A stretch of 64,000 nucleotides of DNA, from NCBI GenBank assembly GCA_039096225.1, contig JBBPEB010000013.1, forward strand, positions 186,001 through 250,000. The letters are read 5' to 3'. Under the pieces are notes generated by a model. It saw only the letters and a program-made list of their open reading frames with translations. It did no database searches and had not been told where the DNA came from. Below are positions 1,520 to 8,248 of this stretch, piece after piece. The DNA comes from Blastocystis sp. Blastoise (taxonomy: Eukaryota; Protista; Bigyra: Opalinata). The translations under genes were made by a program, and so were the position numbers. Position 1 is the first letter of the stretch. Each line of letters opens with the position of its first letter.

Positions 1520-2049
1520 GATTATTGTTATAATTAAGAAAAAGTAGATATAAGAATACAAATAATTATTAATGAATTAATCAATAAATAAAAGTGAATA
1601 CTCAACAATTTTTCTGTTTTTCGTAAAAATAATGAATGGTAACTTCCAGGGTTCGCCAAACTGTACTTTGAGTACGGTCTGTACTCCAAGAAAGTTTTTT
1701 TGTACTCCAAAGAAAATTTCTTTGTAAATGGTTAAATAAGTCTATTATGATAGATATATTATTATAAACATAAAGTAGATGAATCAAACTATCGTTTTTA
1801 TGCGAATAAAGCATTTTTATTGAAGTTGGTTTTTCTAATTGACGATTTTGTTTCTTAAACTCTTATTTGTAGAAATTATTTCAGTAAATAGTAATAATAT
1901 AATATATAATTCATTCACAATTCAAAATGTTCTCCGTCGATTTTAATCACCTGAAAACAAGTAATTCAGTATATATATTTTTTTGTAAAACTCAAATATA
2001 CAATGTTATTTGGATATAAATGAACAAATAAGTAATATTAAAGCTACCT

Positions 2050-2440
2050 AATAGCTATAAAACGTTAAAATTGTCATCAAGAATACTCATTTTTTTACAA
2101 TGCATCAACTGATGTTGAGTTTATCAATATGCTGATAAAGTAAAGCATGTCTACTTTTCTATTTGATAACTTTCGTCGTTTTATAACGATCTTGTATTTA
2201 ATGTAATAATGTAATTAAAAAGTTTTTATTAAATATCATGAAGTAGTCTTGTAGGGACTGTACAGATACATCCTGACTAGTAATAAAAATTAAATAAACG
2301 AAAAATATATTAAAATATTTTTTTTCAAAAACCAAACAAAAAACAATACAATGAACAAAAGCTGGATTTGAAAAAACAATACGTCCAACAAAATGATTTT
2401 TAATAGCCTTATAAAATGCTTTTAAAATACATTTTATATG
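2050..2440 (-). pseudogene. Possible decayed exon fragments of a second captured gene inside the transposon
   Basis: Minus-strand reading KAFYKAIKNHFVGRIVFSNPAFVH, then a GT..AG intron-like gap, then QDVSVQSLQDYFMIF...LLH*IQDRYKTTKVIK*KSRHALLYQHIDKLNIS*. It looks coding but is interrupted by stops. Confidence 0.3.
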
Positions 2441-2580
2441 AAGAATAAGTCACAAAACACATTTATAATATTTATATTATAAAATATATTGTTTTAATGT
2501 TTAAAAATAAAAAAATAAAAAAACGGTTAGTAGTCACTAGCTTTGCAATTATTATATGACTTGATGAAAAGTATTATAAG

Positions 2581-2660
2581 GGGGTTGTTTGGTCAAATGG
2601 TCAGTGCATATAAATTTTTTACATGGTCGACGGATCGATTCTTACGAGGAACTATTTTTT
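2581..2660 (+). pseudogene. Degenerate tRNA (Ala-like) pseudogene / Pol III cassette
   Basis: The 5' end GGGGTTGTTTGGTCAAATGG resembles tRNA-Ala (A-box). B-box GGATCGATTC, followed by a T7 run. Anticodon and acceptor stems no longer pair. Confidence 0.5.
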
Positions 2661-3024: not shown

Positions 3025-3053
3025 ATTTTTATTTCTTGGAAAAACATCTCTTT

Positions 3054-6000
3054 ATGAAACTTGTTCTTTTATATATTTATTTTGATTATCTCTTGATACG
3101 ATTATTTATTTTGGTTTTATTTAGTCAACTTAGTTTATCAAGAGTAATCGCCTTGAGTATTTATTATAATTTTTATAATCTGTTTTACTTAATTGCTTTC
3201 TTTCTTTAGGTATCAAGGTTTTCAATTTTTAAACAACTCTTTATACTGTGAAATCAGGGTCCATAGCGTTTCAGATGGTTCAAATAGATCAACAAATATT
3301 TTTTGTATATAATTCGTTTCTTCATTTGTAATATTTATTTGATTTATCTTTATTTTATAGTGCAGGATGATCAGTATTTTTCAAGAGTATTTATTGTGCG
3401 TTATCTATAAGGTTTGATTAGTATTTATATTAATTATATTATAATTGCTTTTTATCATTATTATTTCATTGATTTATTTGTATATTAGTTTATTATAGTG
3501 ATCGTTATTTTCTTATTTATATTTAAAAGGAATATTATTTCATTTTTGATAACAAATTATATATATAGATATACGAGGTCAATACTTTAATTAAGTGTGG
3601 CATTCTTTCTATGTTTAGAATTATTTTATGGTCCTTTAATGTATAAAAATATTGATGAGTATATATTTATTATTATATTTATTAGTATATTTATTATAGT
3701 ATTTATGATATTTATGATTATGAAAATAATATATATATAGTTCAACTATAGAATTATTTCCAGTTGTTATCATTTATTATTTTATATATATATATATCAA
3801 CAATTAGTGAACAATATGCTAAGGAAGCTATTCAATTATTAAATCAATTAAATGATAAACGAGATTGTATATATATACTTATTATTATATTTATTATATT
3901 ATATATACTTATTATTATATATATATATAGGTTTATATATGGAGAATGAAGTTTATTGGTCAAAAATTATTCATTATATATATATAAATGTTTTTGAAAG
4001 AGATACAATGACGGATTCCTTACAACAACAAGAATAAGTATATATATATATATATTATTATTATTATTATATAGTTATTTTCAATATTATCTGAATTGAT
4101 TCCTATAAATTAAAATAATTCTATGATTTTAGCTACTTTTGCATGTATATATATATATATTTGATTATTATACTTTATTTATATTATCTATATATAATAC
4201 TATTTATATATATATGTATAGATATATATACATCATTATCTTCTGAGAGTCCTTACCTTTCATCCTCTCGCCTTCAGGCCCTTATCCCTACCCTCGAACC
4301 ACTTCTCGCCTCCCCTTTACATACACATCGTCTCCATGCACTTCGTATTTTAAAGAGCTTCCAACAACTTGATGTATATATATTATTTTATATAATAATA
4401 ATATTAATAATAATAATAAATATATATATATATATAGTCGTCTTCAACCTATTGAAAGATCTGCCTGTATATATATATCTTCATAATAATCATTATATAT
4501 ATATATACATTCTTATAGTTACTTCTTATAAGTCCCTCACTGACGCACTCCTCCATTCCTCAAAGAACGTTAAGGCACGTTATAATTCCTATACTATTAA
4601 TTGTATATCAGTCTATATATATATGATTCTATATATACTTATATTTATAGCTGATTTATTAATTGTTATGTATTCACGGGAATATGGTCATGTATCAAAT
4701 TTATTTTCTTATTTATTACCACGTATCCCGCCAAATGAGTATAAAACAGTAGCTATCTATGGACAGTATATATATATATAATAGTATATATAATACATGA
4801 ATAATATATATTCTGTGTATTTTCTGCTAATCTTCTTATTATATATGATCTATATATAAATATATGTATATAGAAATACTAGTTTATTGACTGTGAAATT
4901 GGCGGGAAGTCTTCCTTTGATTCAATTCATCAATATTAAGCCACTTTTCAACAATATATATGCTCAATCAACTCTACAGAATATGTCCGATATACATAAT
5001 ATATATATATGTAGTTCTTATGTAACTAAAAATACATCAAATAAATTATATCGAAATGGAATAAAGACAAATTCTTATATATATAATCAGATACTAACAA
5101 TGGATTGATATTAAGTTTAATTGAACAATCTAAAGTCAGATGGTATATATATATATATATATATATATATATATATATATATATATATATTCTTTTTTAA
5201 TCTATTTATCAATATATATATATTAGGACTCTATCTGAAGACTTATATGCTTCTTTTCTCTGTTTTTATATACATATATACAATTACCCCTATCTATACA
5301 CTTATTGATACTATGCATAAATTATACACAGATCCCCGCGAGGATCTGATGAGCAAAGAAAGTCAAGGCCGACTTCTTCTAGACAATCTTGATTAGTATA
5401 TTATATGTTATATTTTACTATTATTTATTATTATATACTATTATATTATAGGTATAAGAATAACAAAGATTACACTCAATTCTTTAACGATATTATTAAG
5501 AATAGTATAATTATATATATATATATATATAACTATATATAACTATATATAAATATATATAGGTGAGTGATGGTATTGCTCTTTATTCTCTACTCCGATT
5601 GGGTCTCAATTCTACATATATACCTACTCTTATTGATCTGTATATATATAACTATATATATAACTATATATATAACTATATATATAACTATATATAACTA
5701 TATATATAACTATATATATATATAACTATATATATAACTATATAGCTATTTACAATTACCCTTTGATTTGATGATTTCCCGTGGGGTTGAGAATATTCAT
5801 AGTCGTAATCTATTTGTAGATAGAATCAATGGAGAAGCTACTATGAAGTATATATATATGTATTTTTTAATAACCATATCTATCTATTTTTCTCACTATG
5901 TATACCTATATATATTTTATATATAGTGCCATTATTAATTATTTATCGTTCAAAGCACGTCCTATATCTGACAAAACTGTTCTTCGAATTCTAAAGCAAA

Positions 6001-7588
6001 ATATCGAAGTAGATCGTCGTATGTGACGCATACTGTGACATTCTCTTATTTTTCTTTTTTTAATTCTCTATTATAATTATACTTATTATTGTTATTCTAC
6101 ATATTATTATGCTTATTATTATATATATTCTAGCTATATATTCCTATATATATTTCTAGCTATATATTCCTTTCTTTTCTAGCTCATTTCTCCTTTTTAC
6201 ACAGGACATCCGCCAATACTTCTCTTCCTCTTTCTCTCTCTTCTCATTCATTATGATTAATAACAATAAACCTCTCCTGACTCCTTGGCAGCAACTATCC
6301 ACGCGGGAACCAAATATAAGAATGTATATCTATTACAAGAACAGTTTAATACAGATAATATACATGATTTATATGATAGTCCTGAATTCCTTAGATATCA
6401 AGTATATATATATAATATTCTCTATTATTACTATATTTATTACTATACATATTCTATATTTATTACTCTATTTATAACTGTATATATATATATATAGTAT
6501 GTAGATATTCCATTATCTTCCCTCCTTCTTCTTCCCACGGAATCCCTTAATGAACTACTCTCTGTGGCTATGACTACTTTCCTATCTCTCAATTCCCCGC
6601 GGGACATTTCTCTTTGTCTTACAACATTCTTCGATGATCCCTCTATTATTCCCTCTTTATATTATGTAGAAGACACTGTTTATGGTATATATATATATAA
6701 ATTAGTTTGGATTATGATGTCATTCTCTCTTATTCTTTTAGTTTTATAAATTTCTTCCATTTATATATATATATATTTTTTTTCTTATTTTTTCTCTTCA
6801 CAGATTCTCCTGTTGTTCCACTTCGTTACTCTCTCTCGCTTCATCCTCGCCCTATATACAAAGACTTTACAAGTATTCTTAGATAGAATTGGATTAGCGA
6901 GTAAAGACTCAAATTATGTATATATATAATAATAATAGTATTATTATTGTTGTTTTTTTTCTATTACTCTCTATATATCATTAAAAACATAATATTAATG
7001 CATATATTATTATATTTTTCTATAGCACAATACGTTACTCTCTTCGAACATTCTTCGTATCGACATACAGAGCGTCATTCGACCCGTACATTATCATTTC
7101 CAATATAAAACGGATGGTCATGATTGTACATATACTATGTCTATTAAGGCGAAATATGAATTTATGGAGAAAATAAAGAAGAGTCAAGATGATGAAACGG
7201 CACAACTTATTGTATATAATAATAATAATAATAATAATAATAATAATAATAATAATAATAATAATAATAATAATAATAATAATAATAATAATAATAATAA
7301 TAATAATAATAATAATAATAATAATAATAATAATAAACATAATAATAATAAACATAATAATAATAAACATAATAATAATAATAATAATAATAATAATAAT
7401 AATAATAATAATAATAATAATAATAATAATATGAATAATAATAATAATAATAATAATAATATCTTATACTTTTTTGATTGTATTGACTTTTGATTAGTAG
7501 TTTTTTCTTCAAATTTATTATTTTCTGTTAGGTTCTTTTCTCCTACTTCTTTCTCTTTAATAGTAGAATTCTTTATACTCTATTCTAA
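3054..7588 (+). pseudogene. Multi-exon (~20 exons) decayed gene, helical HEAT/ARM-like content (weakly UTP20-like), cargo of the transposon
   Basis: GT(AT)n..TAG introns with mostly phase-consistent exons (e.g. LQALIPTLEPLLASPLHTHRLHALRILKSFQQLD). In-frame stops at 4035, 4111, 5106, 5112, 5118 and 6258-6269, and at least one phase break near 4373-4465. Confidence 0.7.
7217..7460 (+). repeat. (AAT)n microsatellite inside an intron
   Basis: Directly visible; source of the poly-N/I/Y ORFs. Confidence 0.95.
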
Positions 7589-8248
7589 ACATAATTCTTG
7601 ATAATTATCTTTTTTTGACTATTTATAATGTTTGTTAAAGAATAGTATATTAAATAATATATATACTGTTATAATACTGAAATATGATGCTATATTCATC
7701 TTTATTAGTAATGCATCAAACTTATATAAGAAATCTAATATATATTCGTATTCATGGTTATTTTATTTTTTGGGGTATATTTTAAAAAATAACCATATCA
7801 CCAAAAACACGGGAATTATGGTGTACTCAGCCATATTTCGAAACTGGCTTCTTGTACGCCAGTTGAATGATCGTGGCGAACCCTGGTAACTTCCAATAAG
7901 GGGAAGAAATGATGCAGAATCGTCATCGAAAAGAATATAATTCGAATGGTTATGAATGAATTCTAAAGAAGAGAGCGAACTTTTTGGAGATTCAGAAAGA
8001 ATACGGATTGTTTTGTTAATAAAAATATGTTTTTAGCTGAATAGCATCGAATTATGGAAAATTATTATTTCTGGCCTAACTTTCTCGAAATAACATGGGA
8101 AATCATATTCATCATAATTTACGTTTATTCTCTTTTTATAATATTCATGATAATTACTCTGTTTATACTCTATCTATTAAAGAATAATCATGAAAGTTTA
8201 AAAATCAAATAAAACTAACTTGTTAAATACATATTTTGCAAAGTAGAG

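Follow-up and report, generated by a model that had tools for sequence, protein, structure and literature searches.

What is the origin of a hAT transposon that holds pieces of host genes between perfect ends in the genome of the protist Blastocystis sp. Blastoise? The element in question spans positions 1647-7885 (6,239 bp) of the stretch analysed here, hereafter called the window, which comprises 64,000 nucleotides (positions 186,001 to 250,000) of contig JBBPEB010000013.1 from assembly GCA_039096225.1; Blastoise is strain Rus-B, a tortoise isolate (strain table, PMC10690189). The evidence points strongly to a non-autonomous, cargo-carrying hAT element (Pack-hAT) that arose from an autonomous member of one hAT family, here called family A, and that obtained its interior second-hand from a different lineage, represented by hAT family B and an element C. 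The features on which this reading builds are listed below, with the strand where one applies.

1639-1646, no strand: left target site duplication of 8 bp (TSD), letters GTAACTTC
1647-1658, plus strand: left 12-bp terminal inverted repeat (TIR) of hAT family A, by inverted-repeat and genome matching
1659-1719, plus strand: left subterminal region with GTAC repeats; 94% identical to 140-bp MITEs (miniature inverted-repeat transposable elements) over 62 bp and 85% to the 17.95-kb element on contig C28 over 73 bp
1720-2203, no strand: left arm, occurring once in the genome and probably a non-coding arm that belongs to the element itself
2204-3657, plus strand: inner part of the left arm of element C; 21 loci match 2204-3330 with 91-95% identity, and another 11 match about 2204-3030 with 80-85%
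2581-2660, plus strand: RNA polymerase III-like unit 1 with A-box, B-box GGATCGATTC and T-run, no tRNA fold
2948-3025, plus strand: RNA polymerase III-like unit 2 with A-box, B-box GGATCGAATC and T-run, no tRNA fold
3658-4373, plus strand: intron-containing UTP20 piece, by 88% DNA identity and colinearity with the sole full UTP20 locus, C34:672-681 kb
4374-4437, plus strand: AT-microsatellite intron with the approximate join between UTP20 and the second gene (within about 4374-4510), by genome matching
4438-7211, plus strand: second-gene piece of about 13 exons from an uncharacterised protist methyltransferase-like family, frameshifted; 84-85% identical to C3:227295-230210
7212-7461, plus strand: (AAT)n intron in which the borrowed segment ends on the right and meets intron 2 of the element's own transposase, by genome matching
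7470-7699, minus strand: family-A transposase exon 1 (MNIASYFSIIT, 7699-7667) and exon 2 (7618-7470, one in-frame stop), by position and translation
7815-7873, minus strand: right subterminal region, 79% identical to the 17.95-kb C28 element over the last 71 bp
7874-7885, minus strand: right 12-bp TIR, by inverted-repeat and genome matching
7886-7893, no strand: right 8-bp TSD, letters GTAACTTC

Ends of the element and hAT family A

The 12-bp TIR has exactly two matches in the window, even when two mismatches are allowed. Under a base-composition model, the expected number of partners is 3e-5 per window and the p of the 8-bp repeat is 1e-5; in the 33.3-Mb genome, the exact 12-mer is found 57 times compared to 0 times for a reversed control. 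Both the model and the genome control thus agree with an initial annotation of the locus, made from the letters of the window, which had considered this combination of repeats improbable by chance. That annotation also proposed a genome-wide look for TIR pairs with distinct TSDs of their own. Such pairs are present: a perfect 8-bp TSD flanks 10 of the 14 exact TIR pairs read (the window copy and nine others), all of them different, and the four pairs lacking one are MITE pairs. Every other family-A copy begins at CAGGG, with an 8-bp flanking duplication where the TSD is perfect, and we placed the boundary of the window element at CAGGG because the other copies start there with 8-bp TSDs of their own. 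A 12-bp direct repeat, given earlier as an alternative reading, is ruled out by these family boundaries, as the extra TG/CA are flank letters that equal the TIR ends by chance. The perfect 12 bp fit the TIR length of 10-25 bp given for hAT elements (PMC3942097). With 6.2 kb, the element exceeds the usual hAT length of 2.5-5 kb, a typical and not a defining value, as do its relatives of 5.95, 16.2 and 17.95 kb.

Family A comprises two 140-bp MITE subfamilies, three 5.95-kb elements with 99.9% mutual identity and one 17.95-kb element on contig C28; a broken relative is found on contig C23. The 5.95-kb and 17.95-kb elements encode intron-containing transposases, whose models (985 and 920 amino acids) are 47-50% identical, match DUF4371 and contain the motifs LQLDESTD, DGASAM, HCYLH, RWLS and YLCExxFS as well as the hAT catalytic motifs D288, D354, C382xxH385, RW and E923. 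The Dimer_Tnp_hAT domain (PF05699) had no match in the family-A transposases and was matched in family B only, and a PDB search with the transposase alignment returned no match. A hAT transposase flanked by the same TIRs, which the initial annotation had suggested as a check, is hence present in the genome, and together with the 8-bp TSDs and 12-bp TIRs it bears out the assignment to the hAT superfamily.

The GTAC-type subterminal sequence of the window element is common to one MITE subfamily and the C28 element, and the TIR is all that the window element has in common with the 5.95-kb elements. In the C28 transposase, the main exon is open and the motifs are kept. A C28-type transposase would be the likelier helper for the window element because its subterminal repeats match best. 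The C28 element itself extends from L034:1049 to L035:8999 (G000:C28:18748-36698), its transposase apparently open, and holds two further hATs, at L034:2386-6057 and, nested within that one, at 2586-5917; both have an 8-bp TSD, and the inner one has a 590-amino-acid open reading frame (ORF). Its interior includes about 9 kb of exon-like DNA, for which searches of Pfam and Atlas gave no match.

The window element retains the beginning of a transposase gene of its own. On the minus strand, an 11-codon exon (MNIASYFSIIT) starts with an ATG located 187 bp inward of the right TIR; an intron and a second exon of 149 bp, which contains one stop, come next. Two autonomous relatives share this exon layout and start with MNITTYF and MDITSYF at 171 and 173 bp from the TIR, and the start motif occurs a single time in the six frames of the window. 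The gene ends within its second intron, at the (AAT)n tract. Because exons 1-2 of its own transposase remain, the window element appears to be a gutted autonomous family-A copy. The initial annotation had seen no recognisable transposase and missed this remnant at 7699-7470; its description of the element as non-autonomous stands, given that the two exons are all that is left. The arms at 1720-2203 and 7462-7815 are single-copy in the genome, and their local DNA alignment to the interiors of the 5.95-, 16.2- and 17.95-kb elements gave nothing above shuffles; exons 1-2 were detected by position and translation only, not by DNA alignment.

The interior and its cargo

Window positions 2204-7461 match about 20 loci end to end with 89-92% identity, with 92% against the interior of family B and its relatives. 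In total, the interior consists of about 1 kb of the element's own arms including transposase exons 1-2, about 1.45 kb of another transposon's arm and about 3.5 kb of gene pieces. The latter are common to 25 other transposon-borne copies, 18 of which lie inside 16.2-kb family B. This composition contradicts the earlier description of the interior as 6.24 kb of captured host DNA.

The family-B copy read has a length of 16,219 bp (L061:1895 to L062:8612; G000:C20:333394-349612). Its TIRs, CAGGGTGTG and CAGGGGTCA, are imperfect and differ from those of family A, it has its own 8-bp TSD, and its 873-amino-acid transposase ORF with Dimer_Tnp_hAT is 34-36% identical to family A. The family-B left arm is present at about 100% identity in 18 loci, and these near-identical arms are indicative of a recent burst. 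With 18 near-identical 16.2-kb autonomous elements, family B occupies roughly 0.9% of the genome; the part at L062:1250-5700 is T-rich and has no recognisable ORF. Fourteen further loci have the left arm from L061:2356 onward only, a position at which a second, decayed element, C, probably starts; its right end is roughly placed. The window match begins 430 bp inside the C arm, and these 430 bp are shared by family B and the 14 other loci. On the opposite side, the window match stops in the (AAT)n intron, at which family B and other copies continue into further UTP20 exons. A borrowed piece that lacks both donor ends and lies between the ends of a different family is explained most simply as second-hand. 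For family B, one copy was read; C34, C3 and the remaining cargo copies were compared through match coordinates and identity. Five loci with identical scores (C23:345 kb, C20:1059 kb, C17:783 kb, and C13:1163 kb and 1016 kb) contain the C arm together with both A/B-box units and no UTP20 cargo, and would represent another recently spread family that uses the C arm.

The two A/B-box units had been taken for tRNA remnants. ARAGORN found 0 tRNA genes, Rfam gave 0 hits up to E 5 and neither unit has a cloverleaf, which leaves promoter boxes and T-runs only. Both B-boxes contain GGATCGA, and such A-box/B-box/T-run units occur twice in the window compared to 0 in 200 shuffles. Both are kept in the family-B copy read. 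They are part of the C arm and not of host cargo captured by the window element; they may be old tRNA- or SINE (short interspersed nuclear element)-derived promoters.

The gene pieces form a chimera. A family-B exon downstream of the shared part matched UTP20_N (E 2e-23) and human UTP20 (E 3e-14), and the next UTP20 domain occurs at C34:672-673 kb only; as the sole locus with this domain, C34 is regarded as the full UTP20 gene. Window 3658-4510 is 88% identical to C34, and window position 7211 maps just 117 bp beyond position 4510 at that locus. The intervening 2.7 kb map to C3:227295-230210 with 84-85% identity, not to C34. The last exon of this second gene matched an uncharacterised protist protein family with weak methyltransferase hits, and a profile of that family matched the window in five stop-to-stop pieces that are colinear (E 4e-13, 3e-6, 7e-4, 0.1 and 1.8). 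We rejected the idea that the middle segment is a part of UTP20 that was deleted at C34, since its exons match the other family colinearly and map to C3. Both cargo joins fall in AT or AAT microsatellite introns. Protein searches of the cargo were run exon by exon; Pfam and PDB searches of single cargo exons gave no match, and the UTP20 label of 3658-4373 rests on identity and colinearity. The host gene remnants with introns noticed earlier between the TIRs can thus be specified as a UTP20 piece plus a piece of a second, methyltransferase-like gene. A B-like end lies 9 kb from C3:227-230 kb, the likely parent of the second gene, and the C3 locus may itself lie in an element.

Window 3159-3740, located ahead of the UTP20 piece, is exon-like and 72% identical to C33:86622-87222, and may be a piece of a third gene. 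The UTP20_N segment has about 15 further copies in the genome at 71-77% identity, many of them near contig ends (C13:1321-1346 kb; C14:18 and 1305 kb; C17:13 and 891 kb; C25:1032 kb; C26:17 kb and 1281-1302 kb; C31:1344-1364 kb; C4:13 kb; C16:2149 kb; C19:971 kb). These copies represent an older amplification separate from family B, perhaps a subtelomeric one.

The window copy differs from family B by 189 substitutions in 5 kb, which are unevenly spread: divergence is 6.1% over 2204-3290, 0.4% over 3291-3815, 1.4% over 3816-4550, and 3.5% then 5.2% further right. The longest substitution-free run measures 401 bp (the tract 3418-3816, identical to B) and was reached in 0 of 20,000 permutations (p < 5e-5). 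Moreover, the nearest relative shifts along the piece, from C28:243 kb for the arm to C21/C22 for the second gene. The uneven divergence likely reflects gene conversion or recombination among copies, with polishing as a minor rival. It had also been proposed that old cargo was recently mobilised, as judged from its perfect ends. This does not follow: with a change of about 3% per lineage, all 40 letters of the TIRs and TSDs would stay unaltered in about 30% of cases (0.97^40) even if no recent jump had occurred. The cargo is only 4-6% diverged from its relatives, and the arms are single-copy.

Frameshifts and stops arose independently in the window copy and the family-B copy. Of the 39 differences in ten exon stretches free of indels, 19 are synonymous compared to 26-27% expected from the local mutation spectrum (P about 0.003), with a possible bias in that some frames were chosen for being stop-free. 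Read most simply, some of this divergence originated in functional host alleles or was copied from them. RNA data consisted of contigs of three RNA-type runs. Run X1 contains the spliced flanking gene without any difference and is therefore RNA of this organism. In the cargo contigs of run X1, a 48-bp GT..AG intron (4603-4650) is spliced out. One spliced and one longer unspliced-exon cargo contig carry family-B letters, and two others come from further copies; the alleles of the window copy are in none of the cargo RNA contigs, which drop rare variants. The window element is most likely a selfish passenger with dead chimeric cargo.

Proposed route of uptake and competing explanations

We propose that the C/B lineage would first have captured UTP20 DNA at the DNA level and that the second gene would have been joined by template switches between microsatellite introns. 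In a family-A copy, the remainder of the transposase would then have been replaced by a 5.26-kb internal piece of this cargo lineage without the donor ends. Such second-hand uptake may have occurred by a template switch during repair, or by a nested insertion and later deletions, and the right join would have formed in the (AAT)n tract; gap repair with template switching has been described as a capture route (PMC8277862). The composite would have been placed at its present site in trans by a family-A transposase, most likely of the C28 type, and would not have multiplied since.

Several points weigh against this sequence of events. The direction of transfer from B/C to A rests on the missing donor ends and on copy numbers and not on a tree, with one B copy read, and the C34 and C3 loci enter the argument as match coordinates only. 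Finally, the synonymous excess, itself only suggestive, is not expected of purely dead cargo.

The main rival route leads to the same end product by a different path. According to the Pack-CACTA model (PMC8903248), two family-A elements would have landed in one C/B-type copy and their outer ends would then have moved together with the DNA in between. This fits the left end of the window element, which is closest to MITEs (94%), and the right end, which is closest to the C28 element (79%), and nested hATs are common in this genome. However, no inner TIR is left in the window even with two mismatches, two further deletions would be required, and the right join falls in a shared microsatellite, as predicted by template switching. 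We therefore regard a fusion of neighbouring insertions as unlikely, yet as the strongest competitor of second-hand uptake by a single family-A copy.

A bolder version of the cargo's history is somewhat less probable still: several hAT families would form a relay in which host exons are shuffled into chimeras and handed between elements with different transposases via template switching in microsatellite introns, and the UTP20::methyltransferase-like chimera would have been expressed and subject to purifying selection during some of its time inside transposons. That the cargo is or was functional, as a chimeric transcript or protein or through small RNAs from the RNA polymerase III-like units, and was kept by selection, is in our opinion improbable. 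Transcription and splicing of B-type cargo, the synonymous excess and the retention of the A/B boxes in the family-B copy read would be in line with such a function, but frameshifts are independent in both copies read, one pair of them confirmed in RNA, the alleles of the window copy appear in no RNA contig, and several frames in the synonymous test were picked as stop-free.

Direct capture, in which a family-A element took the host DNA and other families received it from A, is very unlikely. Family A does carry large interiors, as the 17.95-kb element demonstrates, and the synonymous excess could reflect separate copying from native genes. However, the cargo is already a two-gene chimera joined to the arm of another element and cut inside that arm, the 25 other copies hold it and reach further on both sides, and it is present in no other family-A element. 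The initial classification as a Pack-type hAT consequently stands with regard to the superfamily, the lack of autonomy, the gene pieces between TIRs and the transposase partners with the same TIRs, and fails with regard to direct capture, as the cargo is shared with other families. An assembly or polishing artefact that pasted family-B repeat DNA between genuine family-A ends is hardly credible: polishing can homogenise repeats, and the 400-bp tract at 3418-3816 is identical to B with neighbours that are 5-6% different, but gene conversion accounts for this tract equally well, there are 189 substitutions in 5 kb plus private indels, the nearest relative changes along the piece and the assembly was built from long reads (PMC10690189).

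Relation to known elements and flanking DNA

Judged by the hAT and Pack-TYPE tests that were run on its sequence, the element classifies as a Pack-hAT. It resembles the Pack-hAT and Pack-TYPE elements of maize and rice (PMC8903248) in being non-autonomous, in having hAT TIRs, an 8-nt TSD and host coding DNA inside, and in its autonomous partner acting in trans. In contrast to these, it resides in a stramenopile protist, and its cargo, kilobases in length and with numerous introns, also occurs in a second hAT family that has a transposase of only 34-36% identity. Animal Pack-TIRs including the frog element Pack-hAT-N8_XT, for which gap-filling and FoSTeST models have been put forward, are alike in DNA-level capture by template switching with short-homology joins; they are single-copy or multicopy and often transcribed (PMC8277862). 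Their duplications are small (median 224 bp) and gene-derived (PMC8277862), whereas the immediate donor in our case looks like a transposon. The closest precedent for family B is the histone H3 hAT of Pseudocercospora fijiensis (PMC6710886), a 9.5-kb element with a transposase domain that amplified a captured housekeeping gene. There, one gene was captured and inactivated through RIP (repeat-induced point mutation), whereas the Blastocystis cargo is a chimera of two genes with near-identical recent copies and spliced RNA, and has probably passed from one family to another.

The transposases described here share the motifs LQLDESTD, HCxLH, RWLS and YLCExGFS and DUF4371 with Buster hATs, and their nearest outside match is a Buster-like protein (31%). 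Compared to the nearest outside relative, each of the three Blastocystis transposases carries about 200 additional residues ahead of its C-terminal domain (P0001 ~690-850; L062:5730-8348). The Buster TSD consensus is nnnTAnnn (PMC3517528). Although the protein looks Buster-like, we did not file family A as Buster because a central TA is present in only 1 of the 10 perfect TSDs.

The Blastocystis genome paper gives bulk repeat percentages only (PMC10690189), and we found no element-level description of a gene-carrying Blastocystis transposon in the literature searched, most subscription journals being outside the search. The present element extends gene-carrying hAT transposons, known before in plants, animals and fungi, to Blastocystis. 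It also illustrates a route by which host exons may move between transposon families and be fused at microsatellite introns, of which this AT-rich genome has many. In addition, some 25 UTP20-like and methyltransferase-like 'paralogues' in this assembly are transposon cargo, and the data point to recently active hAT transposases that carry elements of 16-18 kb, well above the usual 2.5-5 kb.

The same MITE insertion is present on L043 and L050 (G000:C1:375684 and C10:51701) with at least 8.3 kb of flank that is 100% identical, which is either a segmental duplication or an uncollapsed haplotype. On the side of its left TIR, the window element sits 127 bp upstream of the start codon of a host gene:

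1114-1519, minus strand: flanking host gene of 107 amino acids with a weak CHCH hit, spliced RNA seen

No protein corresponding to this gene was found in a sister strain, and the contigs of RNA run X1 gave no sign of its being switched off. In this run the gene is expressed and spliced, with zero differences to the window.

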